Shown: positions 1-56,219 of the stretch, piece by piece
How positions within the stretch are numbered: the stretch's first letter is position 1
Layout of the letters: each line of letters begins with the position of its first letter
Assembly: GCA_964247055.1 (NCBI GenBank)
Contig: OZ176050.1
Location: 4,960,001-5,024,000, forward strand
DNA: 64,000 nucleotides
Direction: 5' to 3'
Origin: Paragordius varius
Taxonomy: Eukaryota; Animalia; Nematomorpha
Made by a program: the position numbers and the translations under genes
The notes under the pieces: model-generated
What the model was told of the DNA's origin: nothing
The model's database searches: none
Seen by the model: only the letters and a program-made list of their open reading frames with translations

Positions 1-1176
1 AACACTACCATCCCCATCACCATAAACCATAGCCGGTTGACTATCTGGCCACTTATGAGTTTTAGCGTCCCAAGCCAATTGTTCAGGGGTCATAACCTTG
101 GTTCCATACATGCAATACAATTTAACCCCAAGTGAAGGATTGTTTTTCAATGGCCCAATTTTGGACGATGGTAAATATATGAGATCACGATTATCAAGCC
201 ACATGGAGTAAACATCGGGTAAATCAAGTGCAAGAAACAGCTCTTTTAAAGTGCTGAGAGAATAATTTTTGTTTGGAGAATAGACTAGGAGTTCTTCATC
301 ATTCCACAATTCTTTTCGAGGAAGGAGCCAGGCTAAACTGGGATACGTACGTTGACCATCCCGTATTTTTAACGCATTCAATGGGTAAGCATCCAAATTG
401 TCACCTGAGATGTACATTTTTAGTGCTTTGACAGTCCCGGCCCAAGGTGCTGACAACGATATGAAAGAGTGAATATATTTATCTTTCCACGTTTGAGATT
501 GTAGTTGGAGAAAATATTTGGCATACAAACAACCCATACTGTGACACAATAAAATAACCGGCTTCAATAAATCACCATGCATATCTTCAACCAAAATCTT
601 CATGTCATTAAGCATTTTCATATTTTCAACTATAAAATACTAAATTTATATATACGCGGAGTTTTCCTGAAATCATAAGGGGCACCACGGATACTTTTGT
701 CACGGACAAGACCTATTTTTACCAAAGAATCTGCAATGTAAGCAAAATATTTGCCTATAAGTTAAACAACAAGTAAAACTTATAGATCGTTTATTAGGAT
801 CCAACCATTCAACAGATGATGTGTTGCCAAAACCAGGGACGCGAATATCCACCCCATCATTGTTTCGCGTTGTATGAGAAACATTATCATAGACCAATCT
901 AAAATTAAAAATTAAGATTACTCAACGTTTGATACCCAACAATCAATAAAGTATGGAATCAGTAATTCAAGATTCAACCATATATTGTACCAATCTGTCG
1001 TACGTTTATAGCAAAGGAGCCTGGGTGTATCATTTCTGTTTAATCGAGCTTCCATATGACTCCCTCCATCGCCCGGAACTATAATATTATAGTTATAAAA
1101 GAATTAAACTTAATAAAACCGGGTATTGACCATACACTAGTGATAGAAGACTAAAAAATAAAAGAGTCCTTTTCAT
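1..1176 (-). CDS. PLA2G15: Lysosomal phospholipase A2 / LCAT-family acyltransferase (3' end runs off window)
   Basis: Exons 1176-1110, 1078-922, 898-780, 754-656, 629-<1; introns 31, 23, 25, 26 nt. Translation shows a signal peptide MKRTLLFFSLLSLVYG, then IPGDGGS, DIRVPGFG, RGAPYDFR, lipase motif CHSMG, SLSAPWAG and YGDGDGSV. PLA2G15 versus LCAT assignment is not certain. Confidence 0.9.
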
Positions 1177-1243
1177 AATGATAAAACATAGAGCAGCTGA
1201 TGATCGGCTTAGAACATGAATGTTGGCGCATAACGAATGAATC
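1177..1243. promoter_or_regulatory. Putative bidirectional promoter, LPLA2/SLC35F6 (67 bp between ATGs)
   Basis: Divergent start codons at 1176(-) and 1244(+). Promoter function is inferred from position only. Confidence 0.55.
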
Positions 1244-3530
1244 ATGACGAATTGGACCAAATACGGGATATTATTGGCCATTGCGATGGTTATTACAGGG
1301 GCAATAAATACTTTATCAACAAAGTTTTTAATTACGTAATTTAAAGGTGGGCAGATATGATAGTGTCAAAAGGATACAATAATAATCCCCACACATTTAA
1401 CCATCCATTTATTCAAGTTATATCTCTTTAATATTTGCACGATTTTGTGTATGATATTTTCAAATGGTTTTATATTATATATTTTACTATTGATTTTAAA
1501 AACCAGTTCCTAAAGTTTCTGAACATACTTAATGTATATTTATTTTGTTCAAATTCAACAATTTTCATAAGTCATTCTCTTTCAACCTTCAATCTAATAA
1601 TCACACTCAACATTTTATTTATCAAAATACTAGCATTTTTAACGTTTTCAATCATATTTATTCCGTTAAAATTGAATTTTTAGTTTTCCTTATTTTTTGA
1701 ATTTTTAAGGGATATAGTTTTTAGTTAAAACTATTTTGGAACGCATGAGATTTTCAAAAAATAGGATTCAGCCATTATGGATGCTTATTAAACATTTGAA
1801 TAATTATTTTTTGTTAGTTTAAAAAATTTAATTTAAGGAAAGTGTAGAGAATTAAGACATATATTAGTGACAACTTTATAATATTTCTTTTATAATCTAG
1901 TCGTGTGGCATGTTTTTGGGCGAAATGCTATGCATAGTAACGTATAAAATTATGCGGTTATACCAAATACGACAAAACCGTAACCGAGAAATCAATCCAA
2001 TGAATAATATTAACCCTTTTTCACCCTTAATATTTTTACCACCTGCCATGTTTGACATGACTGCCACCAGTTTAATGTATATGGCACTAATTTTTACATA
2101 TGCGTCCAGTTTTCAAATGTTACGCGGTTCTGTTATCGTTTTTACCGGATTGATATCAGTCGCTTTTTTGGGTAATCACTTGGGTCTACGTAAATGGGCC
2201 GGAATCTTTGTTATAATATCTGGTCTTATGCTTGTTGGTTTATCTGATGTACTAACCTCAAATGCCAACATTTCAGATCGTAATGCAATTATTACGGGTA
2301 TTAATTAATAATATTTAAAGTGTTTTGATAAAATTTTGAAATTAGTGAAATAAAAGCGCAATTTTTTGCCAATTTCATTTTTAACCTAAGCAATAACAGG
2401 TGTTTTTACTGAAAAGTTCTGTGTTGAGATATTGTGCCAAATATTTAATTTTTCCTTCTACAATATTCCTTTTTTACAATTATGGTAAGGTGATATTGTT
2501 AAACATTCAAAAATCGTAATTATACACACCTTGACATATTTTTAAAATTTAAAACTTATAGTTTATATTAACACTTTTTTCCTTTTGCGTATGTAGGGGA
2601 TATGCTCATTATTTTAGCTCAAATAATAGTTGCATGCCAGGTGTGTTACGAGGAAAAATTCATAACGCGGTATGATGTACACCCACTTCAAGCTGTAGGT
2701 TGGGAAGGCATTTTCGGTTTTTTAATCCTAAGTTTCCTCATACTTTTGCTCAATTTTATTCCCCTGTCGGCGTCTACCCATTCACTTTTCCCTCACATTC
2801 CAGGAACCCGAATGGTGATTGAAGATGTAACTGATGCATTTTATCAAATCAAAAATTCACCTGCTCTCATGATAGCCTTGTTAGGTAAAGATCGTAACTA
2901 ATTAGTTAATGACTTTAACGCAGGAATTTTAGTGCGCTCCACATAATGTTCATATAATTTATATATCGCGTAAATATTTGGCCATATATTACTAGTTTTT
3001 TATACACACATCATTTTTGAATATCAATTATTTAGTACATCTACTCAACTAGGTTAGTAATAAATACTAAATTTCATAGTAAATATATAAAATTTATTAC
3101 TGAAACTAACTTAAAAGAATGAGGAAGATTATTTTTACAAAACACAAAAATAGGAGCAGAACAAAACAATATTAAAATATCATTCAATTAAACACATATT
3201 TAATATTTAGGAAATATCCTTAGCATAGCAGTCTTCAATTATGCCGGCATTGCTGTAACTAAAAGTATGAACGCTACAACCCGAATGGTGCTTGATAGTA
3301 TGCGAACCCTACTTATTTGGATCGTGAGTTTATCATTGCGATGGCAAGCCTTTCATTACTTGCAGTTGATTGGATTCACCTTCCTTATTCTGGGTATGGT
3401 TGTTTATGAACGCATTTATCATTTATTGCCGTCGTGTCAAAATATGCGGCGACAAAATTTATTCGGAAACAACAATACCACGATGGATGATGACTCCACC
3501 GATCCATTGTTTGTGGAATCTGAAGATTGA
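1244..3530 (+). CDS. SLC35F6: SLC35F6-like nucleotide-sugar/DMT transporter
   Basis: Exons 1244-1323, 1347-1416, 1901-2297, 2597-2884, 3211-3530; introns 23, 484, 299, 326 nt. Motifs: MTNWTKY..ITGAINTLSTKWAD, FNHPFIQ, MFLGE, SSFQMLRGS, YEEKF, GWEGIFG, NATTRMVLDSMRT. Confidence 0.93.
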
Positions 3531-4319: not shown

Positions 4320-7300
4320 TTAATATCTTGGGAATAGTTTTGTTAAATCTTGCATGTTTCCTTTAACAACCACCTCTTTAAGTTCAATCTTGGGTCGTGT
4401 TTCAAACAGAAGGGCCCTGTTTTGGAGTGTCCCTTTCTTAATCCAATGTCCATAAATGTGGAAAGCCAGTGTGTCGATATACTTGTGAACGGGTTTAGCT
4501 CTGTAAGGATCCTCCCTCAGAATACTTTCAGTTACTACCAACTCTAGGCCGCGAAGTTTTGAGAGTCGAAGCCTTTGAAGCACAACAATGTGGAGTACAA
4601 CTATAATGGCTTTCTGTACGTGTGTGAAGCCATACAGATAAAAAAATATATATTATGAATCAACAGCGTAATAAAATATTTTTTAGGGAAATATATATGT
4701 ATGGAAACTTTTGATTAGTTACGACGAACTAAAAAATTTGCAATAAAATTTGTTAAGATTGAAATTGATGAATTTACAAAATTGCAATTATAATTAAGAT
4801 GATTAAAAGTAGTAATTAACAACAAAATGATAAAAATGGTCATAAAATACATTTAAAAATTATTGTAATCAAACCTTAAACAGGAGCCGGGGTTTAAATA
4901 TTCTTTTAATGCCAATTGCTTCAATTTCATGGGTAAAAAAGAAGGGATGTTTCAGTGCTTGTTCCGCTGTTAATCGTTCACTCGGTTTTTTCACCAACAA
5001 ATTTTTGATCTTAAAAAATAATTATTACATAAAAGATTGATTAAAAGGGCTTTATTATTTTAAAATTCGAACTAGGGTGTGTTATATTTGTTTCAGAATA
5101 CTATATATAATTGTACAATTTCAAACAAAACAAAAACACAATCAAATTTCAAAAAGATATTGCTATTAGACCATACCGTCAATAGAAGTAAACCCTAATA
5201 TTGCATAAATATTTACCAAATCTTTCGCAATGTCAGACATATCAATGGTTGGATCGGATAGATCTATTTCTTTGTCCATAATGTTTCGGAACATGTACAT
5301 TTGTTTTTTGTGCCAAAAAGGCGTTGTCCCAACCAACAAAGAATACATGAGAACGCCAGAAGACCAAACATCTACGGGTCTTCCGTAACCTTCTGCACTG
5401 GAAAACATGCGACAAGCCAATATTTCAGGGGCTAAGTAGGCTGGTGTCCCACACAAATCTAATTAATCCACGCATCCATAGTTAATAAATTTTATCTTAT
5501 TTTAACCAAAGTTATTATAATTTTTTTAAAAAGCTATTTATTTTAATGCAACATTTTTTTGTGCTACAAAAAAGATATTGGTTAAAAATTGAGAGAACTA
5601 GCTTCATGATGGCCTATTTTAAATTAAACATGACAGAATTAGTTATTTCATGCAACAAATTTGTGACATCAAAATCATATAAAAATAATGAAAATAACAA
5701 CTAAGGTATTATTATTATAATTTAGTTTTATAAGGTGCATAAGTTAATATCTAAATTTAAGATATAATAACCATTTATCTGTTTTTGCGAATAAAATTAT
5801 ATAAAGCTATATAGCCTTAAAAATAAATATAAAAAATGGCACAAAAGAGTTGGATTCCAGCGAGTCATAATAATATTTAATACAGAACCGAAAAAATACC
5901 AAATATATTTGCATGTTAAAAGTTAAATAAGAAGATAATTTACACTTCATTACCTTTTCACTTTTTTTGTCCTAGTTTACATTTTGGGATAATCCCAGAG
6001 CTTTTTGTAAATAAACTACATTTTTGAGATTTGGTTAAGTTCAAATTTAATTATCAAAATTTTTTTTCATGTATTAGATAAATAATGTTATATTTATTAC
6101 AGTAAAACTTCTAGAGCCTAAAATTAGGACAGCTCCAAAAACGATTGAAATGAACAGCTGATACAGAAATGAAAATATATCAAGATTTTGCTGGTTAAAT
6201 GTAGCCCGAAGATTTTTAAAGTTAATTATATACATTTTCCAACCAAAACATTTATTTGCGTGTTGCATTAGCGATTTAAAAAAATTTATAGAAAAAAATG
6301 GCAGCAAAAAAGCTTAAAATGAGGATTTTTTACAATTTTATAAAAAAAATATTCTTTTGTATAATGTGCCCTAAAGAAAGCAGATTTTTAAATTTGGATT
6401 AATACCTGACACACTTTTTAAGATACTGAAATTTTAAATGGTTCTGGGATATAAAACTTTCCCAAAGGTAATGGAGTGTTAACATGCAGTGTGGAATGTT
6501 ATTGTTCGGTAGTAATAACTACGATTGAGAAAGATTAATGTTCGGTTTTTAATAGATTGATTCATAATACCCGGTCTGACGGCTGATGAATGCAGTATTC
6601 ATGGTCATAACCAGTAAATTAATACCAGACATTAATATGTAAATAAAATAAACAAAGTAAATTGAGGAAACAAAAATTAAAATTTTACATTTAGTATAAA
6701 ATAAACTTTAACAGTTATCATTTCGAATTCAGTTAGTATAAAGTTATGATTATATTTTCAATATTTTTGAAAACGATCAGAGTAACGGGGAATTTTTAAC
6801 TGGTTAATAAAAAATTTTACCTTTCAGAGCGTGATCATCTTTTACGGTTATGGAAAAGCCTAAATCCGTCAATTTAATGGAAAAGTTGTCGTCTGATACA
6901 AGGATGTTTTCGGGTTTGATATCACGATGGACAACCATCAATTCATGCATATGAGCTAATGCAGAAAATACCTGTCTCATAATGTGTCTATTTTGTTAAA
7001 AACAATACTAACTTTGTCCTTTTCTCTGATAAAGTAACTTCCTGGGCTAGGTAATCATATAATTCTTTTTTACACCTAAACATATAGCAAAAACTTACAA
7101 TTGTAGAACTAGAAAAATAAAGGAATTCGTCACACAACTATCATATATTTCAACTGCAAATTATTTTTTTATTTATACTTATGTTTGGGTGTGGGGACAC
7201 CAATTTTATAATATTTATTTCTTGCATAGTGGATTCGTATAACAATGTTTTTTCATCTTCTGAACTATAAGTTCCGCTTATATCAACTATTTTAACAGCA

Positions 7301-7510
7301 AATTCTTTCCCAGTTTTCTTTTCAATACATCTTCTAACAAAACTACTCCCACCTCTGCACTATTATCGATATAATTTACTTTCCTAAAAGTTCTTTAGGC
7401 TCATATTTAAAATAAAATTCTTTTCCCAATAGTTCATCTGGCATTAGCGGCTCCTCTCTTTTCAGAGAAGGCCTACGTAACGTTTCGATAGGACTCTGGG
7501 TAATTGTCAT
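4320..7510 (-). CDS. PHKG: Phosphorylase b kinase gamma catalytic subunit
   Basis: Exons 7510-7380, 7354-7179, 7153-7099, 7075-7013, 6987-6821, 5458-5217, 5009-4875, 4613-4320. Motifs: [39 protein letters not shown], and the PHKG-specific tail [29 protein letters not shown]. Confidence 0.93.
5939..6482. mobile_element. TTAA-flanked MITE (piggyBac-like ends), copy 1, in PHKG intron 5
   Basis: Left end tttaCACTTCATTACCTTT is the near-perfect reverse complement of right end AAAGGTAATGGAGTGttaa. The interior (aaaattaggacagctcc..acgattgaaa..cattagcgatt) matches 41.36-41.59 kb. Confidence 0.65.
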
Positions 7511-7634
7511 ACAAATATAATTTATGTAATGAATAAAACTAAGGATGAAAACAAGGACATGGGTAAAATAACTCTCAGGTCAAAAACTTAACATATTGAT
7601 TCTGGAATGCATGCTTATATAGGCCATAACGAGC
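7511..7634. promoter_or_regulatory. Putative bidirectional promoter, PHKG/OSGEP (124 bp between ATGs)
   Basis: Divergent start codons at 7510(-) and 7635(+). Promoter function is inferred from position. Confidence 0.55.
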
Positions 7635-10600
7635 ATGGTTATCGCTTTAGGTCTGGAAGGAAGCGCAAATAAGCTTGGTATAGGCATAGTTCAAGATAAT
7701 ATTGTACTTTCTAACCCAAGAAAAACTTATATTACACCTCCTGGTGAAGGTTTTATTTTTTTTATGAATTTAAGGTTTTTTGCCCCGTGACACTGCTAAA
7801 CATCATCAAACGCATATAATTGATTTAATCGATACCGCATTGCAACAAGCCAATGTTAAACCCAAAGACATTGATATACTATGTTACACCAAAGGTATTA
7901 AGTAAAACAGTTTGAAAGCTATTATAATAATTTTTCAATTGTGTTTTTAATGATGTAATGCATCACCGTATATTTTTTCAAACCTTATTTTCAATAATAT
8001 TGTCTATAGATAATCTACATTTTTGGGCAGGCATATATTAATACCGGTCTTATTTTCAGATTTCTTTCAGTGAACATAGTTATTTTAAAATTAAATCAAA
8101 ACTTAAAACGTTATTTCGTTTTTCACCTTAGATATGGCAATTTTTGATATTTTTTTATAGTTTAAAATCATCTTCGAAAAAAATTATTAAAAAGATGATC
8201 ATTTTCGGTAGCTAAATTACTGAATCATTTTTATAATATAGTAGCTGGCCCTGTCACGCTTCGCTGTGACGTAGTCTCTCCGATAATTATCTTAATAATT
8301 TGCAATAGAGGTAATTGAGATTAAAAAATAATAAAAAACATATTTAATAAAAAGAATGTCTTTAATTATTCTTTTACAGGTTTTTTTATAGGCTTAAATA
8401 TTGTTTACTCGAAATTGACCATATTTAAACTGTCCCTTATTATAAGATTTTCGTTTTACCAAATCATGGTGAAATTGTGTTTATACACATGGGATCAAGG
8501 GATATAAAAAGAAAATCATTTATGTTTTTAAAGGAAAGTATGATATTATACAAATTCCTAAGAAATGTGTTTAACTAAACCCGTATGAATTCTTAAGTTT
8601 TTGGGAAAATTAGATCCAAAACCACGCCATTTTTGTACGGCCTCTCAGTTTTAAACAGGTAGACCCTTACCCATAGACCTATATGGAAAAAGCTTTGAGT
8701 TAAATTCTTTGCCTTTATAGGGCAAATATTTGGAATCATCTTTGATACCAACGTCTCATGGGTTATATGGGTCGTTCGAAAAAATACATCAATACTAAAT
8801 AATGGTTATATGATGGCGTATTTTTAGGACCTAAAGGCCCCAATTTAACGACGAATAAAACGTGTGACCGTATATGAGCTCATACGGCTTCATATATTTT
8901 CTGTAAATTAGCCCCAAAACAACGCAATTTCTATATAGTGGCTCAGTTTTTGGCGGGTAGCTCCCTACCCAGGGGCAGGTAAAAAAAGCGTCGGGCAAAA
9001 TTTTCGCCTTTTATGGGGAATATCTGGAATTATCATGGATTCCATATGTTCCTATTGGTCTCATGGATTTTCTTTAATTTGGCTCCAAAGGCATGTTGTA
9101 TCGATATGATGACGCAGTTTTACGCGTGCCCTAACCAAAAAAGCAAGAAAACGCTCAATATTTTTGCCATTCTGGTAATACCTGAAATCATGATTGATTC
9201 CATATGCTTTCTTAGAATTGCCTCAAAACCAATAAGTCATTCTATTGTGGCGCTTTTTCAGTGCAAGGGCCTAATTAAGGGGTATTTTGATAAACCGCTC
9301 TACCTAAATTTTTCCCTTTTTACGAGTAATATTTCAAGCCCTTATTGAGTTCATATGGCCTGATAAGTTTTTTAGAATTTGCCTCCAAAATCACGCTATA
9401 TCGATATGGTGGCGCAGTTGTAGGCTGTAGCCCCCTACCCATAGGCCAATATTAAAAGGACGTTTGATAAAAATTTTTGCTTTTATAGGGTAATACCTGG
9501 AATCATCATTCATTCCTTTTTCTTCATAATTTTTAGAAGAATGGCTTTAAATAATAGTTCAATGATAGCGCATTTTTTAGGGCGTAAAGGGCCTAATTAA
9601 CGGCCAATTTAAAAAAATCACGACTTATTTTACCTTTTTACCGGTAATATTTTAGGCCCTTATTATACTTATAAGGCCAGATAAGTTTTTCTGAATATTA
9701 AATTCTAAACAAGGCAATTCCGATATTGTGGCGCAGATAAAGAGGGGTAGCCCCCTACCCAGATGCCAATATAAAAAAGACGTTCGATGAAAATTTTGCC
9801 TTTATAGGGAAATACCTAAAATCATCACTCATTTTATATGTCCCTACCCAGAGGCTGATACAAAAAAAGCGCTTGATTAAAGTTTTTCCTGAATACCTGG
9901 AATCATGAATGCTCTCATTAGTTTTTGGAAAAATTGCCTCAAAAATAAAATATGATCCTATGGTGGCGCATTTTTCAGGGCGCGAAGGGCGTAATTAACG
10001 GCTAATTTAAAAAGCCGGACTACTTAAATTCTTGCCTTGTTAAGGGTAAATTTTAAGCACCTATCGAACTCATATGTGATTGGTTTTTTGAAATTTAACC
10101 CCAAAGGCACTCTATTTAGATATGACGGGGCAGTTTTTAGCGGGTATCACCTTACCCAGCGGCCAATATAAAAAAAACGCACGACTAAAATTTTGCCTTA
10201 TAACGCGGAATACCTGGAATCATTATTGAATTTTTACGGTCTCATACCTTGGGCGAATATAGATTCAAAAAATTATATTTGTGGATTTTATTTTCGAAAA
10301 AAATGGCATTTTGCGGGGGGAGCGGGTAAAAAGAGGGCCTAATTTAAAAAAGCGAGCCGACTATGTTCGGCTCAATCGAAAAAAAGTAAAAAAAAATAAT
10401 ATTTGAAATCGAATGGTCCAACATGTTTTCCGGAAAATTGTCTCAAAGACACGATTTTTGTGGACTTGTGTTTTAACACCCGTTTTTTCGCGGGGTGGGC
10501 CCTAAAAAAACAGACGAAGCTATTGTCGGGGCATTCATTAATGATTATATTTTTTCGATATTTGGATTTGAATGGGTTTACCGGTTTTCTGGAAACAGAT

Positions 10601-16814: not shown

Positions 16815-19761
16815 TTAAATATTATTCGTTTCAATGAGATTGTTGTTGTTATCAATAACATGATTGGGCGAATTTGGGTTTCCTGATTGAAAATCAAAGA
16901 TAGTGATTTGTATGGTCCATGCTTTAAGGTGAGCGATAGGCATTATAGGTACTTTACTCAAGTCAATGTATGTCATATTATTGATTATATTCCATTCCAA
17001 GGGTATACTTTGATCTATGGATAAGAAGGAAATTTTTGTTTCCTTTTGTGTTGATTTTGCCGTTTGCAGTAACCCAGTTAAACTGGACAGTGTTAACAAA
17101 GTGCTTTGGTTGACATCATTAGATTCTGGCCAATTCATAAACATGACATTGATGGTCAACGTTGTTAAATTATTATTATTGTGGGATTTATGAAGAAACG
17201 GTATGTTAGTGGGGAGATGTTTTTTACATGTGTACCTTTTAACATAAATGTAAAAAATTATACATGAAATTGATATGAAAGTTTGAAAATGAGAAAATTT
17301 TATAAAACAATAATAGCATATACTTATTCTTGATTAAATAAATAAAATTAATTATTGTGTATTTAAATAATCATTAATTAGTAATAAAGGCTAATTCGCG
17401 ATAAAAAAAGACAAAATGATTAATAGGATAAGCTTGTCAACTAAATCAAAATTACTCCAAACCTAATACAAATAAGCATATAAATTTGCTTTACAGGGTA
17501 AATTATTAAAATAAAAGCTTAATAACTTCATTACAAAAGGGACATTTAAAGTTAAATCATCAAATAATGATTGATTGATAAGTAATATTATTATACCAAA
17601 TATTTTGAAAGGGTTCACTTTGGGCAAATGAGCAGGCATTAGTTGCGTATATTGCATCCCCATTCACTTCCAACCATTTTCCGAGTTGTAATAATCGTTC
17701 CTCAAAAATTGCGGGTATAACTCCGTCCGATGTTGGCCCAACATTTATTAAAATGTTTCCACCCAAACTAATGAAAAAATATTTTTTTTAATCTTTTATG
17801 ATTTTTTGAGAATATATAGAGCGCATATTAAAAAAATTACAATAAAAATTATATCCGTATAAAAAATTTAAAGCGGTGGCCAACTGAAAATTTGCCCATT
17901 ATTTTTTAATCGTAATTCTCTAATGCGTGGTATAGTTATTAAAAAACCAGTATTATAAATGTGTGGATTAAATATTTAACAAAAAAATAAAAACTCATAT
18001 TCAACAATACGAGATATGGTTCACAAAAAACGTTTTTATAATTAAAATGAACAGAAAAAAATAAAAAATTAGATGAAAAAAACCTTATAGTTTTGAGTAA
18101 AGTTAACAATAAATCTTCGAAACTCATAACATCAGACATGTCCATATTCCTGCGATAACCCCAAGATCTAACATCCAGTGTCATACAATTTTCCCATTTA
18201 TGTTTCATTGTGGTATCTAAATAATTGTGTTTATTTTTAATATATTTTGTCATGTGATTTAGCAAAAAATCATATATGACAAAAATTTATGGATTGAAAA
18301 AATTTATTTAAAAAAAATCAAAATACTTGGTATAAAACGATCATCGCAAGTATAATAACCGCCATGGTGACAAGCACAGCCAGTACCCCATCTATCATTC
18401 GTTACAATTGAATCTTTTACTGGACTAGGAATAGATTAGTAAATAAAAGTTTATTGTCCCAACTTAAATAAAACTAAGTCATTAATGGGAAATTTACAAT
18501 AATAAGTATTTTTAAAGAAATTACGTTAAATATTTGTAAATAAGATTAAAATGGTTTTTAAGTAAAATTCCGGTCAAAAAATCCCCAAAACCGAATGAAC
18601 AATAAAAAGTTACCAACTTTACACAAATAATAGTATGTTGTGTAAAAATAAATATTTAGGTAAATTAAGAAAGTTATGAAAATTAAACTCATTACGATGC
18701 CTTCATTGTAATAATCTGTTTTTAAAATATAAAAATATCTACCTTTCATTGTAGAGCCAAGCAAGTATATCCAAACTTTTCCAATATTCAGGCGGTCCTG
18801 CATCACCATCAAGCCATAAAATTTCGGGTTTATATTTGTTTACAAGTTCCATAATTTGTGGATGAGAAACTTTCTAAATTTTGTAAGAAATATTAATTAT
18901 TTGAATAATTTTTTTAAATTAACTTTTGGGAAATAAATTACTCAATCGAAAAATTTGTGCATTCCTAACTTTTACCGGAAAAAAAGTATATTATTTTTTA
19001 CTTCGACATATTCTTGAGTAGTGAAATTTGACCCCCGATCTTTGATATAAAGTGGATGATACCATTCATATAGTGAATAATATAACCCAAATTTTATGTG
19101 CTCATATTGTTTCATAGCGTTTGACAATTCATCTAAAAAAGATAAGTTATTGATATATATATATATATATATATATCAAAAAAAATATTAAAAAACAATT
19201 TTTAACCAAAATTGATTGACTACAATTAATAAACTGTAAGCAGCAGTTTAATTTACATATGTACCAACTATATCCCGTTTAGGACCAATATCAACCGAAT
19301 TCCAATTCCAGGAGTACGGAGATGGCCACATCGTAAAACCTTCGTGATGTTTACTTGTAAACACGACATATCTTATTTATAGAATAATAAATTTACTTTG
19401 CGCCGGATTTATTAAATATCTCGGCCCATTTGTATGGATCAAAGAAAAATGCTTTAAAATCATTAGCAAAATCAGCATATTTAAAATTTGGTGGATAATT
19501 TGATGCCGTATAATTGGTAACATCATTTGGTCGTCTTTCGGTTAATAAATTGTACCAAAACCATTCGCTATGAAATCCCGGGACTGAATATACACCCCAA
19601 TGTATAAAAATTCCAACTTTGGCTTCATCATACCATTGAGGTAAGGGTCTAGAATCAATAGAATCCCAAGAAGGAAGATATCTTAAATCATCGGTAACAA
19701 CGAATAACACAGTTTTAAAAAATATAAGAAAACTAAAGATGAGGGATTTTAGGGTTAACAT
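16815..19761 (-). CDS. FUCA: Alpha-L-fucosidase (GH29), 518 aa
   Basis: Exons 19761-19397, 19371-19265, 19132-19002, 18873-18743, 18424-18327, 18216-18084, 17767-17597, 17235-16815 give one open frame. Signal peptide, [33 protein letters not shown], nucleophile [25 protein letters not shown]. An in-frame upstream ATG lies at 19776. Confidence 0.95.
19153..19176. repeat. (AT)12 microsatellite in fucosidase intron 2
   Basis: Direct reading of the sequence. Confidence 0.9.
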
Positions 19762-19778
19762 ATGGTATTCATTCATAA

Positions 19779-21627
19779 ATGAATTTAAATTTAAGAATAA
19801 ACCAATTTTCACCTACAAACCTTATAAATGATATCGGTAATGATTTAAAAAATGAATCCTGTATATGCGGTATAGATGAGGCTGGAAGAGGGCCTGTTTT
19901 GGGCCCTTTAGTCTACACAATTTTAGGAGCAAATTATGAACAAATAAAAGATTTGGAAAAAATGGAAATCAAAGGTATTATATAACACTTATCAAAGATT
20001 CAAAACAGATTACTCCCGAAAAGAGAGAAGAAATATATCAAAAATTAAAAAACACATGTAATTGGATTTCCACAATTTTAAGCCCAAATTTTTTAAACAT
20101 CAATATGCTTAAACGGTATTGTATAATATCAATATTTTAGCGATAAATATAATTTAAATGAAATTTCGCATGACACCATAATAAATTTAGTGGAACAATG
20201 CACTCAAATCACTAATATCAATGAAGTTTACAAAAAAATAATTTTAAGTTGTATATCGATACAGTCGGTCCACCTGAAACATTGTCAAATAAACTAAAGG
20301 TGAAATTCCCAAATATAAAAACTATCAAAGTGGAAAAAAAGGCTGACGATAAATATTTAATTGTGGGAGCTGCCAGCATTTGTTCAAAGGTTTAATTTTA
20401 TCAGTATTTTTTAGGTAATTAGAGATTATTTAGTAACGAATTGGGAATTTGTTGAGGGATTAAACCATAAAAACTTTGGATCAGGCTATCCATCAGGTTT
20501 ATAATTTATTGTATATATATAAAACATTAGATCCTCTCACAAAACAATATATAAAGGATAATTTAGATTCATTTTTTGGATTTTCCACATTTGTTAGATT
20601 TGGATGGTCAACGGCAAAAGTTTTGATTGATGCAAATTGTATAAATATACAATGGTATGTCCTTATTTTATTAATTTAAGAAGAGATGTAAAAGGCCCCC
20701 CACACTTCAATAGTGTTACTATGCAATAATCTTTTTATTAAACCTTAATTTTCGGTATAATTTATTTGGTAAATATTCAATGTTATCCATATCTCTTCTC
20801 ATATTATCTATTTTGTTATAATATTTTTTTATTATTATTGTTGTCCAAAAATATATATTTGATTGCTGGGAAGAATAATCCATTTAAATTTAAGATTATT
20901 CACAGAATGAAAACGTATATGTTTAAACCGTCATGTTGAATTTTAAAGGATAAACGGAGTTTGTTCCCAATTAATTAGTATAATTAAGTAATTAGTATAA
21001 AATAATCAAGAAACCCTATAAAATTTCGGGGAAATAAACAATTATTTTTTCCATTATATGAATATTGGTTTTGGAATTTTTATGTAAAAAATGTTAGGAT
21101 TGAAAATTCGATCAAATATTATATATTTGCCATATTAAATTAATTGTATTTAATACAATAATTCAATTAAAAATATTTGCATCTGTAATATATAATCGCC
21201 ATGCTTTTTGTTGTTCGGATTTGACTTAATAAAATTAATGGACTATGAAATCCGGGAAAATATATTTTGTTTTAAAGACGATCAAATATTTTATCTGCAT
21301 GAAAATTAATTAATTAGATGTAACTTTCTGTTTTTTGTATTTTGCGAAATAGAATTCTAAATTAACATTTCTATTTAAATTTTTGACAGGGACGAACAAG
21401 ACGACAGCCAAAAATCAGACACCACGGCAAATAAAGAGAACTCAAGCTTAAACAACAAAAGAGTTAAGAGAGCGCTCAAAAAATCAAATAACGCATCAAA
21501 CAAAGATAATCATAGCATATTAAAATATTTTAGCTCCAAATCAAATATTAACACTGTCAAAGATATGAATGTATCATCATTAACGTATCAACATATATTT
21601 CCAAATATTTCCCACAATTTTGTATAA
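19779..21627 (+). CDS. RNASEH2A: Ribonuclease H2 catalytic subunit A (327 aa)
   Basis: Exons 19779-19974, 19998-20115, 20141-20225, 20249-20389, 20415-20496, 20531-20654, 21390-21627; introns 23, 25, 23, 25, 34, 735 nt. Motifs: GIDEAGRGPVLGP, DSK, LYIDTVG, KKADDKY, GSGYPSDP, FVRFGWST. Confidence 0.96.
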
Positions 21628-25300: not shown

Positions 25301-26878
25301 TCGTAACTTAAAACAAAATAAAATAAACTGTTAATTTGATTTAAATAGCGTAAAATATGTGTAACTAGAAATGAAAATTTGATAAATTCAACTTTTATGA
25401 TAAAAACATGTATTTGACGGTTTTAAACCTTAAACATTCCCAGTAATGACATAACCGGCTCATACGAGGATTCAAAAAACAAGGGAATGTAAAAATTATT
25501 ATAATCATTTTAAAGTTATAACAGACAAACATAAACAAAAAGACATATATTTTTAACAAAAGAACCATATTTTTTTTAAACTTGATTTTAAATAAAACTT
25601 ATCGTTTTGGTTTAAAAAATGAGGATTAGATAAATAAATCGGCAAGACTTAATTATATAAAGAAATTTATATAGTTTATGTAAAAAAAATTAAGGTTTTA
25701 TAAAGTATGGATTGTCTTTTAATTTTTACATTTTGTCCGTATATTTTCAGTTTTTATTGTATATTAGGAAATGTGTGTAACTAACCTACAATCTTTTTAG
25801 CATTTAACAGGGCTTCACGAGCAATATCAACACTCGGTCCAAGAGTACAGTAACCATTCTTATCAGGAGGGCTTACTTGTATAAGGGCCACATCAAGTGA
25901 CATAATTTTGCGTTTAAACAAAAGTGGAATTTCACTCAAAAAGATGGGAACGTAATCGGCTAAACCGTCTTGAACCGCTTTTCGTACATTGGCACCAACG
26001 AAAAGACTTGTATCTCGAAATATGCCTATTCGATATATATAAGATTTTTCAAAAATGAAAATTTGTTTAGTTATGCCATAACTTTACCTAAATTAAAGGT
26101 TTTTGACAATATATCCACAAATTCTTAAAAAAATATTTTTTTTACCATACTTTAGGAAATATGTCATTTATTATAGGGATACAACAACATTTTACAGCAT
26201 TTTATGTTTTATCATATATTAATAAATTTAAACAACAGAGACCAAAAATTTAAAAAATATGCATTAATTATCTTTATATTCGCCTTTGGCGTATAGTTGA
26301 AAAGTATGAATAAAAATCATAAATTGAATAAATTAATAACAAAATTTCCATAAAAATATTAAAAACTATTATAATTTTTCATAAATTGCCCATAAAACAC
26401 ATTAAGTTGAAAATAGGAAAAATAACACGCTTATAACCATAATTATTCATTTTGTCTGTTTTTAAAACTTAAAGCTATCAAGAGCTTTACAGAAATATAA
26501 AATCAACCTTGGTATTCTGGTTTAACGTGTTCAGCAGGACCCTCGGTATGAATATGAACCACCTCAATATTCTTTAAATTATTTTCTTTGGCATATTTAG
26601 CCATTTCAGAAACGAGAGGGTATGGCGTTGCTGCTCCGCCATGCAAAAATATTCTATCATCTTGACCATAAATATTTTTAAATACTTGATTTAATACAGG
26701 TTAGGGCCTCTCGGGCACTCTGAAACAATGGAAGCTTATTAGGAATCGGATATATGGGTTCAGGAGAAAATTCCTTTTCTTGATACTCCGGCGTAACATG
26801 TTTGGCTAAAGTCACTTGATTTCTACAAAAATATTTGTTGCCAAATCCAATTGATCCCCTTCCAAATATTATTCGCAT
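22301..26878 (-). CDS. Acetyl-CoA hydrolase / acetate:succinate CoA-transferase (family I, 4-hydroxybutyrate CoA-transferase-like), 480 aa
   Basis: Exons 26878-26686, 26660-26508, 26025-25786, 25039-24851, 24473-24120, 23632-23504, 22485-22301 give one open frame. Motifs: HGGAATP, YVPIFLSEIP, QMGIGSIPDAV, HSEMFSDG, SGFGGQVDFIRG, TSRAHVHYVVTEFG, IAHPKHRE. The N-terminus is basic and presequence-like. Confidence 0.95.
22783..23266. mobile_element. Small foldback/MITE with subterminal GTTCAAGGAC repeats in the last intron of the CoA-transferase gene
   Basis: 22783-22836 is the reverse complement of the 23161-23266 arm (TATATA.CATTTGC.CTTCAAGAGTGTCCTTGAAC). The right arm has four GTTCAAGGAC copies spaced 18-20 nt apart. 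Confidence 0.7.
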
Positions 26879-26942
26879 GGTCAAAAGTCAAGTAAATCTA
26901 TACATTCTGCAAATCATATGCGGGGCGTATTTTTTTAATAAG
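26879..26942. promoter_or_regulatory. Putative bidirectional promoter or 5' intron between the CoA-transferase gene and SOAT (64 bp)
   Basis: Divergent ATGs at 26878(-) and 26943(+). 26892-26942 also reads as a 51-nt GT-AG intron. Confidence 0.45.
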
Positions 26943-29900
26943 ATGATTTTGGACAAATTCGTGGAGGCGTCGATAGAATTGGAGAGAGATATCGTGGATG
27001 ATATACGAAAAAATGTTAATAAATTTATTGAGAAAACCAAAGTTTGTCAGAAAGATTCAACGATCGTTACATCGAAATCGACACCTCTTTTGATTTCATT
27101 AAAGTATATTATTGTTTTGCTATATTTGTATAGCGATGAATTAAAAGAGAAACATTTTTCGGAGAGACCCTCTATGTTAACGTATAATATATTATTTATT
27201 TTGCAAGCGAAATGTTAGAAGTTAATCATATCAAAACGATTTACAATATATTTGCTGCATTGTTGATTGTGTTTTGTCTAAATACTATCGTTTTTGACCT
27301 TATTGAAGGTGGAAAGTAATAATATTTTTACCGTTTTAGAGATATTTGGGATTTTCAATTAATAACGTATTCCCTTGGTCAGTTCCCTCATGTCATAGTT
27401 CTTTGGTGTTGTATGATGCTTTCCACAGTCTTAATTTTATTTCCCGCCTTTCGTTGTTGGGCCTTGCTTTATTTAAAATATTTAAACAGGGAAGAAGGTC
27501 TCTATTTGGATGGTCATAATATTATTGAAATGAAACATAATAATAGTAGTATTGGTGACAGAAAAGACGGCGGTATAAGGTTTCGACCATCACATAATAG
27601 AAAATCTCCGGATGATTCTTTTTCTCCCACCAGCGATCGTTCTTTTTTGGATTGGGAAGGCCGTTATCAGGATATCAAAGGTTTTAATTTTCATTTTTTC
27701 AGAGATTAAAGTACAAACCGTTTTTGAATTACGGTTTTAAAAAGTTTTTGCCGAAAATGGTCGGACCCATTGCTTTTTGGTCGTATGGAGAGTTAGCCTG
27801 ATTTTCACTTTGTTTTTGAATTAATATATATTTTATACAGTAAACATTTTTGAGAATATGGGTAAAATCGCATTATTAAAAGAATATAAAAATTAAATTA
27901 ATTATTTTTTGAAACTGCTTGCAACTGCTTGGATTCTGGGCCATACACTACTGTTTAATCACCTGGTACATAATAATTTAATTTACATAAAAATTAAATT
28001 TATTAAAGGACGATATAATTTATATTACTTTAAGGAAACACTATTTAATTAAAATTGATTAGCAATATTTAAGAATTTTAATAAAATTTTTGGATAATGT
28101 ATTAGACACATCAGAAGACACAAGTAGTTCAGCGTCTCACATCTCCAAAGATTATCAACATCTCGATTCTCCTGAATTACTCGATGTTTCAAAGGATGAA
28201 AAAACTTTTGTTGACAAAAGCAACAAAAATACCACCAAATTAATCCATAAAAGCCATAATAGTAATATTAAAAAAACTAATAATTCCCCCGAAAAGGAAA
28301 AACATGTGAAATCATCCAAAAAACGTTTCTATCTAATGATACCATCATTACCAACAACTTTTAATGCACAAACATTTGTGTGCATTCTATGTATCTTGCT
28401 ATACGCCCTATACCAAGCAGCTTTTTTAATCATCCCCATATATTGGATAATTAAAGTGTATGATTTGCCCCCTGCTTCATCTTTCCTTATTATGCTGGAA
28501 CAGGTTGCATTTTTTATTCCTATTTAACATTTCTCTACAAATTAACCTTCAAAAATTTACACTTTAAAGTTTAAAAATTATTTGGATCATTTTTTAATCA
28601 AATTTACACTATTTACCTTTTTAATTTACCATCGCATTTTATAAATTTATTCCTGAACTATCGCTTTAAATTCATTCACCATTCAATAACAAATACACCT
28701 TTTGTTTTATATCACTCCAACTAGAAATTAAATTTTTAGCTCTTTAAATCAGACCCTCAGCTTATCACCCTTTAACATTTTAGATTTACATATTAAAACA
28801 TTTAGGATTTAAATTTATTTTTTGAGATAATTTAATTTTTTTCCTGATTTATTACTTCTTTGTTTAGCAATGTTTATTTTATTTTTAAAGATATTAGAAA
28901 GTATAGGAGTAATTTATGTTACATAAAAATTGATTTATAAAACAGGAGAAAGGATAATTATACTAAAAAAACCTGTTTTTGATAACTGTAGTAATGTTAG
29001 ATAAAATTATTAAAGATAAAAATAAAGAAAGTTTTTACATTTTTACCATTTTTAAATATTTTTTGGAAATATTTATGGTGGTTATATGTATTTTCGTTAA
29101 GATAATATTGGTTATAATTTTTTGTAGGTGGATACATGTGCGTAATAATTAATACATTAAGTGAATAAACTTCGTTGGTAACCTTGGAATAAACGATAAA
29201 TAATAATAAATATTATATTAAAATTTTGTTTGTTTTAAGTCATTAATCTCATTTAATATATTTGTGTACTTCCTCCTTTTTTGTGTGCTAATTATTATTT
29301 TTTATTCTGTCGTTAAAAAATATTTTTAACCATAATTTTTTTAATTTTTTAAATAAAATATTTAAAATTTATTTGACATACCTATAATAATAATAGTTTA
29401 CTAATATGTATTTATTATTTTTAGATGCGAATTTTGATGAAAGTTCATTCATTTATACGGGAAAATGTGGCTAAAATTAAGCATGGAACAGTTGTTTCAA
29501 AGGGTATACTCCAAATTTATTAATTTACAAATCAGTTTTAGTGTTACAGAATCAGTATAAATACATATAATTTAAAATATTATAGAGATGTTATTTTGAA
29601 AATTTATTAGTTCTATATAAAAAAGATAAAACAAAGCATGAAAAGCTGTTTCAAATTGTATATTAATAAATTTATTTGTTTCATAAAAAGCATAACTATA
29701 ATTTTTGATCATCAAAATTATATTAAAAGAGACATTTGCTTTGTGTAAAAAAATATCTAAAGGATGTGATTTGACCAAATATATAATTATTTTTTGTTTT
29801 TAAATTATATATTTTAATTTTTTATAAATATGCATTATATATGTAATTTTTTACCATTTAGCAGAAGGCGAATTCGAAAAAATTGAACGAAAACCTCCAA

Positions 29901-32900
29901 CACCCGAAGATTTAATCCCAAATTTTTCGAAATATCTGTATTTCCTTTTTGCCCCTACCCTAGTTTACCGTGACTCTTATCCAAGGTTTAAATTGTTTCT
30001 TAAAAATAAGCCTCATATGTGATCTTTTTCGATGAACGAAACTAGGCACTATTATTTGAAATGTTTTTTATTTTGATTACTAATCAATTTTTTACCGCTG
30101 GTTTTCCATATTTTTACTAAAATGGTTTCGGATTTTAGTATTTTTGTTCTAAGATTGTTATTTTTTATCTTCCATTTTATGGAATTTATGAACAGTCAAA
30201 AAATTTCCCTAGTTGTAAGACGATGGATCAATACATAATTGATGTGTCATCAATGATAAGTTAAAAAGACAAGGTGTAAAAAGTATGGCTCTCTTTTTAC
30301 AATTATTGTTTTTTTGTTTCAACCTTTTTTTGTCCTTATATAACAGAGTCTACAAAATCGGGGGTTATAAAAAAAATATTGATGAATTAAATATATTCAG
30401 ATAGGAAAATGTATCATAATCTCATGATGCTTTTGGTTTTGGGCTTTTTCAAGTATTTTAAGAAAATTATTTACACTTTTATGGGAAATGCTCCATATCA
30501 GAAAGTGGCAAAATTTAAGCACATTTTTTATAATAAATATCTTTGGTGAAAGCTATATGCTTCATTCTAAAAAATATCACTAAAATTTATTATAAACTAT
30601 TTATAAAAAGCAAAAATATTTTAAAAATCATATTTTTAGATGTAGGCTCCGAAAGTCCCAGTTTTCGCTCTTTTATAATGGGCTATTTTTATTAAATAAA
30701 ACGCAAAAATGCAGAGGTTGCGCGATAAAAATTTTTAAATATATGCTAAATTTTGATATTAACTAAAAATATTTTTTTAAAAATGCATATTTTTTTAAAA
30801 AATTTTATTTTTGCAATATTTTGTTAAAGCCTACTTTAAACTATTTTGAGGCATTATGGAAACGGTATAAAAACACTTTAAGACATTATAAAAAACCTTT
30901 TTTTAATGATGCTAAATATTTCTATCATTTCAGAATTTCGATTAAAACATTTTCTCGTCTTCAAGATTATGTTAAATCAAATTTATGTTCTTTTACAAAA
31001 ATTCACCAAAATTTTAAAGCAATCGAAGCTTTAAAGCAAAATTTTAGGTGATACAGACGTTCAGCATCATATAATGGCTCAAAATAGTAAAAAGTACGCT
31101 TCAACAAAATACTGCAAAAATTAAATTTTTAAAAAGAGTATGCATTTTCAGAAACATATTTTTAGTTGATATCAAAATTTAGCATATATTTTAAAATTTT
31201 TATCGCGCAAGCTCGCATTTTTCCGTTTTATTAAAGAAAACTATCCCATTTTAGGAGAGCGAAAAAATTAGGACTTTCGGAGCCCACATCAAAAAATTTA
31301 ATTTATTAAATAATATTTGTTTTGCTTTTTATAGGTAAATTTTAGTGATATTTTTTATAAGGAAGAAGCATTTAGTTATCACCAAAAAAATTTATTACAA
31401 AAAATGAGCTTAAATTTTGCCATTTTCTGAAATGGAGCACTTACCACAAAAGTAAAAATAACTTTCTTTAAAAATTGTAAGCACCGATTTTTCATACATT
31501 TTTCTACCGGCATATATATTTCATCATGATATTTTTTATGTGTACTGTGTTAATTCATTTTTTACGATTTATATTTAGGACGACTACTGTACATTGGGAT
31601 TATGTCGTTTCCAATTTGGGTCAAGTTGTAACGTGCCTATTCTTTACATATTACATTTTTATACGTTTTTGTATCCCGGTGTTCCAACACTTTAATCAAG
31701 ACCATTTATCTCCAAAGGTTTGTTTAATACTCTTGATTAATTTTTTACTTTTTAAAGGTCCAATATCATTAAAATTAGGAGATTTTACTTTGAAGAAATT
31801 TGCCTTTTTTTATAATAAACCAATTTGTAACCCATATATATATATATATATATTTCTAGAAGATGAATTATTAATCATCAGCACTAAAGTATTTATTAAA
31901 AAAATCTTCTATATAAAACTTAAAGTATCCAAATATGTCGTTTACATTCGAAATAAAAAATTTACATAAATATATAATAAAATTATTGAATTTTAGACGA
32001 TTTTATTATCAGTGTTTGGTTCGATGTTACCCGGTACATTGGTCCTTTTAATTGCTTTCTTTGGAGTCCTGCATTCTTGGTTGAATGCTTTTGCCGAAAT
32101 GTTACGATTTGGTGATCGTATGTTTTATAAAGTAGCTTTTACAGATAATTTATATATAAAAATGATAATCTTCTGTTGTATAATTTACTATTTGAATATT
32201 TATATTTCTATCCAATATTACAAAAAATGTTAATTAAAACAATTAAATTTGCATGCTTGAAAATTTTAAATACTTGAATAACTTAAAATTTTTAGCATCA
32301 TGATATAATTTTGCTAGGATTGGTGGAATTCAACTTCCTTCAACCATTTTTATCGTACATGGAATATTGTAGTACATGATTGGTTATATCTCTACATCTA
32401 TAAAGATATTCGTATGGTATATTTTTCATATCCATAATTATTTTTAGTTAATTTGATAAATTATTACCTTTTCCCTATTTAATGGAGGGGGCCCGGGTAC
32501 ATATTGGTGTATTTTACCCACAATTCTCAATGTATAAAAACTAATATAATGAAAGTTATGATTATTATCAAACATTAAAGTTTTTATATTAGATGAAGCT
32601 TTTATATATAAACCAGGGGCTGAAATTTTTAAATAGCATACAAATCCAAGATGGATAAACAACTTTCAAATAAAGATTTTGAAGTTTTTATTAACCCTAG
32701 CGATTTAAGAAATAAAATATTTGGCGCCAAAAGGTTTGAAATGACCATTTTTTGCAATTCAACTTTTTGAAATTCTTTTAGTATGATGCGTTTAGGCCAT
32801 AGTTAATTAAACCCAATATGATTGATACTATTAACGCCCACTCTTGGATATACAAAACTATCCCCAAAATAATTGATTAAGTGTTTATATAAAAAAATTT

Positions 32901-42829: not shown

Positions 42830-46551
<3,722 letters not shown>

Positions 46552-53600: not shown

Positions 53601-56219
53601 TTTAATATGAATTAATAAGGTGCTCATAATGGTTCATAGATTAACTATGGTAAAACTATAAAATTTAATCTATTTTTCTGACAAAACTCAATGCATATAA
53701 ATATGATAAATATTGATTTTATAAAACTTAAAAACTTCCATTAGTCCTTGAATAAATGGGAGCTAAAATATTATATTAATGCATAGCATCAACATTAAAT
53801 AGTTATTAATCATTAAATAAGACAAGATAAGATTTATTAATTTGCATAGAAGGCTTAAAACTAAAGGATTTTTACACATTATATTGTTTAAAAAAAATAT
53901 TTTCCAATTTTAAGGAAAAACGTACTTTTGAAAATAATAATATTACCCCTTACAATTTTTAAAAAATAAAATAAATAATAACAGTATTAATGGATCATTT
54001 CGAAAATAAGCCAGACTTTTGAAGAAGCAATAATATTTAAGACAAAAACATTCCCTTACTTATTCATATGTTAATAATTCGTAATTCTTTACTTTTTAAA
54101 TAGAATAGGCATTACTCATGAGAAACTATAAATATATTATACTTACCACCAGTCTGACACATAATTCTCCGTAAGTATCATTGAGCGAAATGTCAAACAA
54201 CCTTGTAATAAAAATCCAATGCCTTTTTCAAATTCCTGTATAAATATTGTAGATTTATTCACATATAAAGTTTTATAAAAAAACTCAGAAAATTCTTTAG
54301 GCACATATCCTTGCAAAACAGAAAGATTCTGCCTTATTATCTTTCAAGCAAAAATAAAATGATAAATTAGCTAAAAAACAACATCATTTTGACATATGAA
54401 AAAAACGTAGGTATAAAAAATCAATACATTCAATCTTTGTTTGTAATTGACTGGTACCAAGTGTGGACTGTATTGCTGTAAAGTTTGTAAATTTTCACGT
54501 AATTTATCCATAGTGTCTTTAAAGAAGGGAACTGGTAATCTTGGTAATAATGTTTGATAAGCATATAAGCCAGGATATGTGTCGAGTCCCAATGCAGAAA
54601 TAATTGAATCTTCAATATTTAATAAAAAATTATTAATTTTGTTGATATTAACAGCGAAAAAAAAATTGATTTAAACAAAGAGTATTCCAAAAAAATTGAT
54701 GTAGATTAAATAAAGTGATGGGATATTGTCAAAAATCTAAATTTCAACCACTTTTGATCAATATATTAAGCAAAACTTAATTAATTAACTAACATTAAAA
54801 ATACTATTAATTATTGAAAACTTTATATTTATCTTAATTTTTATCCTGTCAAAAGGTTTATAACAGATTTGAATTGTTTTATATAACTTCCCTTGTTTAT
54901 GCGCTTAATTAAATTAACACACATCTATATAACCAATGATAAATGGTAAAATTATAAAAAAATATAAAACTGAAAATGGTAATGTTATTGTTTGGTTGAA
55001 CAGCGGAATTAACGTGATTGCTATCAGAATTTGATTTGTTATTCAAAGGTTCTGTGTTAATCCCGGCTTTTGTTATACCATTTTTTTCTATTATATCAGA
55101 TTGTTGTATTAATATTAAAACAATAAACACAAGATATTAAATGATGCCAGAATAAAATTAAATAATTATATATATAATTATATATTTTTAAATATAAAAA
55201 TTTATTTTTTGAAAAATATATACTTGTGTTACTGATTTGCGGTCCATTTCTTTGTTCAGCTTGCGTTAATTTTGCATATTTCACAATATCTTCATCATTG
55301 AGTTCTGTGGAAAATTTTCGTTGTCCAAAAATTTTAGGTCGCTCAAAAAAGGCCGTAAATATCCGGACCCAAAACATATACCACCAAACTTGTTTACTTT
55401 CCGATTTGATTCCGTCATCTTTTAACAATTTATTCATTTGAGATAATAAGATAATGTTTATATTTTTATTTTTGTGATAATCTTCCTCAGAAATACAGAT
55501 TTACAATAAAAGGGCCATTAAATCAATGTAAGTTTCTAATATTTTTTCAAAATTTTAGCCTAACATTTATCATTAACAGTTTTTAACTGAAACAATTAAA
55601 AGTCATTTTCTTACCAGCTTTATCAACATTCATTTTATAATTTTGACATAATTTAATCCATTTAAATAAAATTTAAAATGTTTTTTGTTGTATTATTAAA
55701 TATAATAGGATATAGTTACATATAAAAATTATGAGGAGTCATGAAAAAAAACATTTATTTTACAAGCAGTGTGGGTCAGTGTAACATTGCAACAAAAAAA
55801 AATTAAAGAGTATTTTAAACTTATAAATAATACCAAAAATTAATATTTTTTGTAATATATATTTTTTAAAATTAAAAAAATAGTACTGATCCACAGAGAT
55901 GGGGACAACAAAAAACGACAAAAGTAAATCCTTATTTGACTGAATACACAAAAGGTAAGAACAAATATTAAAAACGAGATCAATAGCTTCCAGTGAGTAT
56001 TGGTTAGTGCTAACATTAGACATAATATTTACTTGATAAGAAGGTAGTAAGGTAGAGTTCAGCAGAAAATCCAAAGAAGAAATTTATTATTTGAAAAAAA
56101 TAATTTCTAAATAGGCTTGTTGTTTCAGGAATACATTCAAATATACAATACGCTACACAAAAACATATTAATGAATTTATCAAAGCAAATGGCCATAAAA
56201 AATATAGTTTTGAAATCAT
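47662..56219 (-). CDS. CPT1: Carnitine O-palmitoyltransferase 1-like (5' structure provisional)
   Basis: TM exons 56219-56033 and 56009-55887. Catalytic-domain exons from 54609 to 47662 contain [34 protein letters not shown], catalytic [51 protein letters not shown]. The start codon and the exons between 55887 and 54865 are uncertain. Confidence 0.9.

Follow-up and report, generated by a model that had tools for sequence, protein, structure and literature searches.

Probable spliceosomal introns of 21–34 nucleotides beside kilobase introns in the genes of a horsehair worm

When 51 animal genomes were compared, introns shorter than 30 bp were encountered only in the myxobolid myxozoans and in Dicyema, more lineages being expected to follow (PMC13644364, September 2026); that survey also describes reduced GTa/AG signals and canonical U2 (PMC13644364). 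Somewhat longer "microintrons", with a length peak at 37 bp, are known from flatworms, where they are clustered, biased towards the 5' ends of genes and found beside introns of about 3 kb (PMC6530080). The papers searched yielded no report of intron sizes for Nematomorpha. The subject of the present text is a 64,000-nucleotide (nt) stretch of DNA (positions 4,960,001 to 5,024,000 of contig OZ176050.1, assembly GCA_964247055.1, entered as the horsehair worm Paragordius varius; the whole stretch is hereafter "the window"), in whose genes segments of 23–34 nt interrupt the reading frames. Judged from the genomic sequence, these segments and their counterparts in paralogous genes are very probably true GT-AG spliceosomal introns of the U2 type that have been reduced to 21–34 nt (mostly 23–25 nt), in the genome of a nematomorph or a close relative.

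How such introns compare with the described ones depends on the property considered. Their layout recalls the microintrons of Opisthorchis felineus, other trematodes, cestodes and monogeneans in that a discrete short class is set amid kilobase introns (PMC6530080), and also in that the short introns adjoin one another and are 5'-biased, as is the case here for the genes of a PHKG-like kinase, of the catalytic subunit of protein phosphatase 1 (PP1), of an LCAT-like lipase and of RNase H2A. The flatworm introns, which often are without a polypyrimidine tract (PMC6530080), nonetheless have their peaks at about 37 bp and about 90 bp, whereas the commonest sizes here are 23–25 nt, and they belong to Platyhelminthes, not to a nematomorph-like ecdysozoan. 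In size, the likeness is to Dicyema japonicum, whose GT-AG introns are shorter than 30 bp and retain little more than GTa and AG as splice signals (PMC13644364); that paper presents the short introns of Dicyema as a genome-wide length distribution, whereas the genes considered here also hold kilobase introns, some of them repeat-bearing. The preliminary description of this DNA had named dicyemids as the only animals with comparable introns, which has to be corrected, as the myxobolids Henneguya, Thelohanellus and Myxobolus have median introns of 22–27 bp and a weak A-rich candidate branch region, while keeping canonical U2 small nuclear RNA (snRNA) and U2AF (PMC13644364). Myxobolids are, however, cnidarians in which the short length is the genome-wide median, and the tiny introns described here make up about a third of the introns and are clustered at the 5' ends of genes. 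Beyond animals, Paramecium (about 25 nt), Stentor (15–16 nt) and chlorarachniophyte nucleomorphs (18–21 nt) (figures in part from PMC13644364) are alike in demonstrating that introns of 15–30 nt are within the reach of a spliceosome working by intron definition, and differ in that nearly all of their introns are tiny.

The preliminary description had listed 24 GT-AG introns of 23–34 nt in ten genes, all of them said to be needed for restoring conserved reading frames. Twenty-three of these could be located with the sizes given there (nine of 25 nt, six of 23 nt, two each of 26 and 24 nt, and one each of 29, 30, 31 and 34 nt), and the six coordinate pairs offered as examples are all correct, whereas the 27-nt item drew no support of any kind: the single candidate of that length near a gene, 34787-34813, lies just 5' of the start codon of a receptor tyrosine kinase (RTK) gene. 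All 23 located segments have GT at the 5' and AG at the 3' boundary, with an A+T content of 72–88%. Homology was searched exon by exon, using profiles, solved structures and a Gordionus ortholog, and support was considered strong if adjoining exons were colinear without gaps with a profile, structure or ortholog, or if paralogs provided the evidence. Seventeen introns have such support (three in the LCAT-like gene, four in the PHKG-like gene, one each in OSGEP, alpha-L-fucosidase and sterol O-acyltransferase (SOAT), five in RNase H2A and two in PP1); three or four of the original 24 are without homology support. Given the base composition here, GT and AG would each be expected at a frequency of about 0.05, and the occurrence of both at 17 of 17 junctions fixed by homology is far beyond chance.

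In the LCAT/PLA2G15-like lipase gene (1-1200, minus strand), the second, third and fourth introns, at 899..921 (23 nt, phase 2), 755..779 (25 nt, phase 1) and 630..655 (26 nt, phase 1), separate exons that match Pfam LCAT at positions 5-24, 27-60, 66-97 and 102-250 in succession and the Gordionus ortholog P0001 at residues 18-68, 70-108, 110-141 and 143-352, leaving precisely one residue per junction for the split codon. The PHKG-like kinase gene (about 4870-7510, minus strand) has four tiny introns in a row, with exons falling on positions 10-60 and 102-153 of the Pkinase profile. Its first intron (7355..7379, 25 nt, phase 2) interrupts the glycine loop (...YEPKELLG + K | GGSSFVRRC), and the exon that follows opens at Pkinase position 10 with its first residue; the second (7154..7178, 25 nt, phase 1) comes after an exon whose last residue falls on position 60, and the joined sequence reads HPNI-I-EIYDS; the third (7076..7098, 23 nt, phase 2) is flanked by exons of 17 and 20 codons, which together with three split codons provide 40 residues for Pkinase positions 61-101; and the fourth (6988..7012, 25 nt, phase 2) precedes an exon whose first residue is at position 102. 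For context, the fifth intron of the same gene (5459..6820, minus strand, 1,362 nt) joins ...HALK-D.

The single tiny intron of OSGEP/Kae1 (7635-13428, plus strand), its first one (7750..7774, 25 nt, phase 1), separates an exon 1 matching TIGR03722 positions 2-34 from an exon 2 matching positions 38-76, and the first intron of the alpha-L-fucosidase gene (16818-19776, minus strand), at 19372..19396 (25 nt, phase 2), parts Pfam Alpha_L_fucos positions 11-108 from 110-146, the split codon for K taking profile position 109. RNase H2A, which starts from 19779 on the plus strand, carries five. The first (19975..19997, 23 nt, phase 1) lies between TIGR00729 positions 1-38 and 40-73, the DSK motif being restored by a split codon for D; the second (20116..20140, 25 nt, phase 2) restores the frame into a 28-codon exon 3, whose residue count fits TIGR00729 positions 74-101, which is indirect but consistent; the third (20226..20248, 23 nt, phase 0) and the fourth (20390..20414, 25 nt, phase 0) enclose an exon 4 that over its entire length corresponds to TIGR00729 positions 102-150 (Pfam RNase_HII 103-146); and the fifth (20497..20530, 34 nt, phase 1) is followed by an exon 6 whose first residue is at TIGR00729 position 175 (match 175-205). 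In SOAT (about 26880 to past 31900, plus strand), the exons around 27316..27339 (24 nt, phase 2) match the SOAT1 structure 6l47_A at residues 66-100 and 104-147, the second match opening at exon residue 3, so that the exon itself begins at 6l47_A residue 102, which leaves residue 101 for the split codon.

The gene for the PP1 catalytic subunit (42830-46120, plus strand) deserves separate consideration. Its first intron (42882..42910, 29 nt, phase 1) joins V to RGSKPG, STPPase_N positions 13-48 being matched from residue 2 of exon 2. The second (43043..43066, 24 nt, phase 1) is a multiple of three in length and stop-free, and reading through it results in the sole gap relative to human PP1-alpha, namely eight residues placed within the metal-binding motif ICG|DIHGQ of a protein that is otherwise about 95% identical. 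In Paramecium, stop-free introns with a length that is a multiple of three are in short supply. Further downstream, the gene has ordinary introns at 43298..43376 (79 nt, joining ...YDE-C to KRRYSIKLW) and 43482..45389 (1,908 nt, joining CCHG-G), both on the plus strand and given here as context.

Two further PP1 genes are present elsewhere in the genome, and both have tiny introns at the positions occupied in the window gene: two of 23 nt each in one paralog (L033:1480-1970, G000:C1:10018536-10018987) and one of 21 nt in the other (L034:1360-1830, G000:C6:5066751-5067066). A three-way alignment has exons 2 and 3 at 132 and 231 nt in all three genes, and 56 of the 74 differences between the window gene and its closer paralog fall on third codon positions. 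The segment within ICG|DIHGQ, by comparison, is 24, 23 and 21 nt long in the three genes and the first segment 29 and 23 nt, all of them keeping GT...AG and being otherwise poorly alignable. As a 23-nt segment would shift the frame, it must be removed, and, since the segments vary in length and the exon lengths are fixed, the segments are non-coding stretches within coding genes; this comparison of coding and non-coding evolution covers the two PP1 introns.

The same genes hold introns of entirely ordinary sizes. Those of the PHKG-like gene measure 25, 25, 23 and 25 nt and then 1,362 and 207 nt, those of PP1 29 and 24 nt and then 79, 1,908 and 371 nt, and the 25-nt intron of OSGEP is followed by one of about 3 kb that holds repeats; in the fucosidase and transporter genes the first intron alone is tiny, and all introns found in the LCAT-like and RNase H2A genes are. 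Tiny introns lie side by side in the 5' parts of genes, with introns ranging from 79 nt to about 3 kb further downstream, and the coexistence with introns of up to 3 kb that had been reported earlier is borne out. The designation of the tiny introns as a "dominant class" was too generous: they are the commonest size class and account, on a rough count of exon pieces, for about a third of all introns in the ten genes. By phase, two of the 23 tiny introns are in phase 0, 12 in phase 1 and nine in phase 2. Phase 0 is usually the dominant one among animal introns, and its shortage is marked here, unless this is a small-sample effect.

As regards the signals within and around the tiny introns, exon ends favour AA(A/G) before the GT, the third intron nucleotide is either A or T, and the 3' end is T-rich at -6 to -3 and closes with (T/A)AG, with an A at -9 in 15 of the 23. 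G+C amounts to about 17% in the tiny introns vs 37% in exons (training exons). The U12-type donors ATATCC and GTATCC are absent from the 23 introns (the U12 branch site being TCCTTAAC), and no match to U12 snRNA was obtained in the genome, in a search run without a positive control. An inventory of snRNAs and spliceosomal proteins, which the preliminary description had proposed, turned up U1, U2, U6, SF1 and SF3b1, all canonical: the genome has 46 matches to U2 snRNA, with GUAGUA intact, U1 snRNA with an intact ACUUACCUG, U6 snRNA with two matches only, and encodes SF1 (SF1-HH) and SF3b1. Many of the U2 matches are clustered and diverged within about 270 kb on one contig (G000:C3:257000-528000), and U1 copies are clustered on contig C6 at 565-633 kb.

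With canonical machinery and no sign of a special machine, ordinary U2-type splicing by intron definition seems to be the most economical reading, in which the major spliceosome would take out introns that as a whole barely exceed the span it must cover. Recognition then seems to draw on the terminal motifs GT(A/T) (5') and (T/A)AG (3'), on an A/T-rich interior in which a branch adenosine may be available some 6–10 nt from the 3' end, and on the sharp drop in G+C relative to the exons; excision from RNA, branch sites and recognition mode are all something that we infer from the genomic letters.

A number of results speak against these segments being introns of a nematomorph spliceosome, or at least against so broad a statement. 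Support is partial for four of the 23 introns (1079-1109, 1324-1346, 26661-26685 and 27182-27207), and open frames are the sole basis of two others (31452-31481 and 56010-56032). The branch motif TnAy occurs in 16 of the 23 introns, with 15.3 expected from shuffled introns, i.e., without any excess. Searches with the lipase and receptor kinase proteins returned no product from the same species. The assembly, 110.6 Mb in 44 contigs, is smaller than the published nematomorph genomes, which are of 200–300 Mb (bioRxiv 10.1101/2024.06.11.598342). A statistic computed on 200 kb more of contig C1, in which GT-AG segments bridging open frames were counted by length and set against five control dinucleotide pairs (with variants that filtered for tightness or G+C or scored codon usage), has no size peak above the controls in that sample and is of low power; because the few true cases are lost among chance open frames and frames carried by repeats, it is uninformative either way, and the tiny class is therefore shown only where homology fixes the junction.

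For the introns with partial support, the evidence is as follows. Across LCAT-like intron 1 (1079..1109, minus strand, 31 nt, phase 1), a signal peptide ending in ...PVLL + I is continued by PGDGG, and the orthologs of insects and hemichordates have PV(V/I)LIPGDGG. The first intron of the SLC35F-like transporter (1324..1346, plus strand, 23 nt, phase 2) joins MTNWTKYGILLAIAMVITGAINTLST + K to WADMIVSKG...HPFIQ, a join that we take to resemble the N-terminus of SLC35F6; the exons around it, of 27 codons each, have no profile match, being too short for one. For the intron of the acetyl-CoA hydrolase/transferase-like gene (26661..26685, minus strand, 25 nt, phase 1), residue 2 of the downstream exon aligns to residue 22 of the 4-hydroxybutyrate CoA-transferase 9vag_F, and the upstream exon has no match. 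The exon downstream of the SOAT intron at 27182..27207 (plus strand, 26 nt, phase 2) corresponds to 6l47_A residues 66-100 from end to end, the upstream exon, located in the unconserved N-terminus of SOAT, being without a match.

The two candidates resting on frames are weaker. At 31452..31481 (plus strand, 30 nt, phase 1), the downstream SOAT exon covers 6l47_A residues 235-312, but the matching begins only at exon residue 17, and the 25-codon frame upstream has no match; at 56010..56032 (minus strand, 23 nt, phase 1), in the N-terminal membrane region of a CPT1-like acyltransferase, open frames of 84 and 55 codons are joined, neither having a profile match.

It may accordingly be asked whether the introns are real and a sizeable part of the list is nevertheless mis-specified (a wrong acceptor, a feature of an untranslated region, a chance join), the class then being smaller and less uniform. 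That the candidates at 31452-31481 and 56010-56032 and the 27-nt one have nothing beyond open frames to commend them fits this idea, as does the failure of four look-alikes on homology: the 22-nt segment 5195-5216 had to be rejected, its donor being that of the true intron 5010-5216 (207 nt); the 22-nt segment 43298-43319 was rejected too, its donor being common to the true 79-nt intron 43298-43376; 17236-17263 is unproven, with a junk upstream frame and no homologous continuation; and 46120-46147 is unproven, with a continuation unlike PP1. (One more candidate, 54476-54498, was unconvincing in either phase.) An open frame by itself is a misleading guide here and insufficient for calling an intron, these four look-alikes being false or unproven. 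Seventeen junctions are nonetheless fixed by homology or paralogs, and we regard mis-specification as an unlikely account of the list as a whole.

The more radical alternatives fare worse. Were the assembly to represent germline DNA from which the segments are removed at the DNA level, in the manner of the internal eliminated sequences of ciliates, lengths of 21–34 nt would be unsurprising, as they overlap the sizes of such sequences in Paramecium, but the boundaries are GT...AG in 23 of 23 cases and not TA...TA, the tiny segments share genes with ordinary GT-AG introns, and precise intragenic DNA excision of this kind has, to our knowledge, not been reported in any animal; we consider this highly improbable. 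Even less can be said for assembly or sequencing artefacts, or for small insertions in decaying pseudogenes, which have nothing specific in their favour besides being the generic alternative whenever frames need restoring. Random insertions would not all be GT-AG, 72–88% A+T and 23–34 nt long, the PP1 exons are conserved in coding fashion while the segments vary in length, and the same intron positions are occupied in three PP1 paralogs, all of which makes this the least credible of the explanations considered. Genuine, strongly shortened U2-type introns thus remain by far the preferred reading.

That the host is a nematomorph was also judged from the content of the assembly itself. Two proteins of the window were searched, and one nematomorph, Gordionus sp., provided the top match for both: 285 bits and 52% identity for the LCAT-like lipase (next match 202 bits), and 332 bits and 55% identity for the receptor kinase (next match 225 bits; residues 560-898 searched). 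The first 500 residues of the latter, which are unconserved, gave no match, and its Gordionus ortholog aligns only from its own residue 82. This RTK has two WSC domains and an FN3 domain, an unusual set that is common to it and the Gordionus top match. The mitochondrial contig (L024, G000:C44:5980-10320) contains palindromes with zero spacer whose arms measure 131 nt and 97 nt, the one with 97-nt arms lying inside an ATP6-like frame (genetic code 5), and long perfect palindromes inside mitochondrial coding genes are a nematomorph trait (PMC6649704, PMC10380579). Upstream of cox1, hairpin units of 52 nt are repeated in tandem on the same contig (L024:770-1472). The 18S gene is at G000:C2:1811658-1813466. 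Taken together, the protein matches and the mitochondrial palindromes point to Nematomorpha as the probable source.

The remainder of the window is unexceptional. Its G+C content is 28%, no tRNA or Rfam matches were obtained within it, and the gene set is one of ordinary animal genes, in agreement with the "animal-type genome" of the preliminary description. Apart from the genes already located, it includes the SLC35F-like transporter (1244-3530, plus strand), a tetraspanin, the acetyl-CoA hydrolase/transferase-like gene (to about 26878, minus strand), the WSC-FN3 RTK (34834-38400) and the CPT1-like acyltransferase (minus strand). Four pairs of genes are arranged head to head: the LCAT-like and SLC35F-like genes with start codons about 67 bp apart (1174-1246), the PHKG-like gene and OSGEP with about 124 bp between them (7508-7637), the fucosidase and RNase H2A genes with either 2 or 17 bp (19761-19781), and the acetyl-CoA hydrolase gene and SOAT, whose start codons may overlap in CATG (26876-26879). 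Because four such pairs have near-adjacent start codons, very short bidirectional promoters are suggested to be common here. A dispersed repeat with short open frames (8600-10700) takes up the second intron of OSGEP (roughly 3 kb) and is found again, on both strands, near the end of the window (60000-61500).

Introns of 23–34 nt are shorter than in almost any other animal, and what is described here seems best viewed as a known phenomenon met with in a new lineage, its two-class layout resembling that of flatworms. The horsehair-worm lineage would be the third animal case of introns shorter than 30 bp, and we lean, with some reserve, towards it representing a third independent animal origin of introns below 30 nt, which would be without precedent both in Ecdysozoa and in genomes lacking uniform compaction. 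On the practical side, annotation pipelines with a minimum intron length of 30–40 nt or more would leave many of the genes here broken or mis-framed, and may in this way contribute to the low completeness scores that have been reported for assemblies of hairworms. With 23-nt and 2-kb introns within the same transcripts, the case would also be more useful than the other two: the lower size limit of the animal spliceosome, the choice between intron and exon definition and the reason for the 5' clustering could all be studied within single genes. If the reading is true, one animal spliceosome would work at both size extremes (21–34 nt and repeat-bearing kilobase introns), and closeness to the cap or promoter may be what helps near-minimal introns to be recognized.

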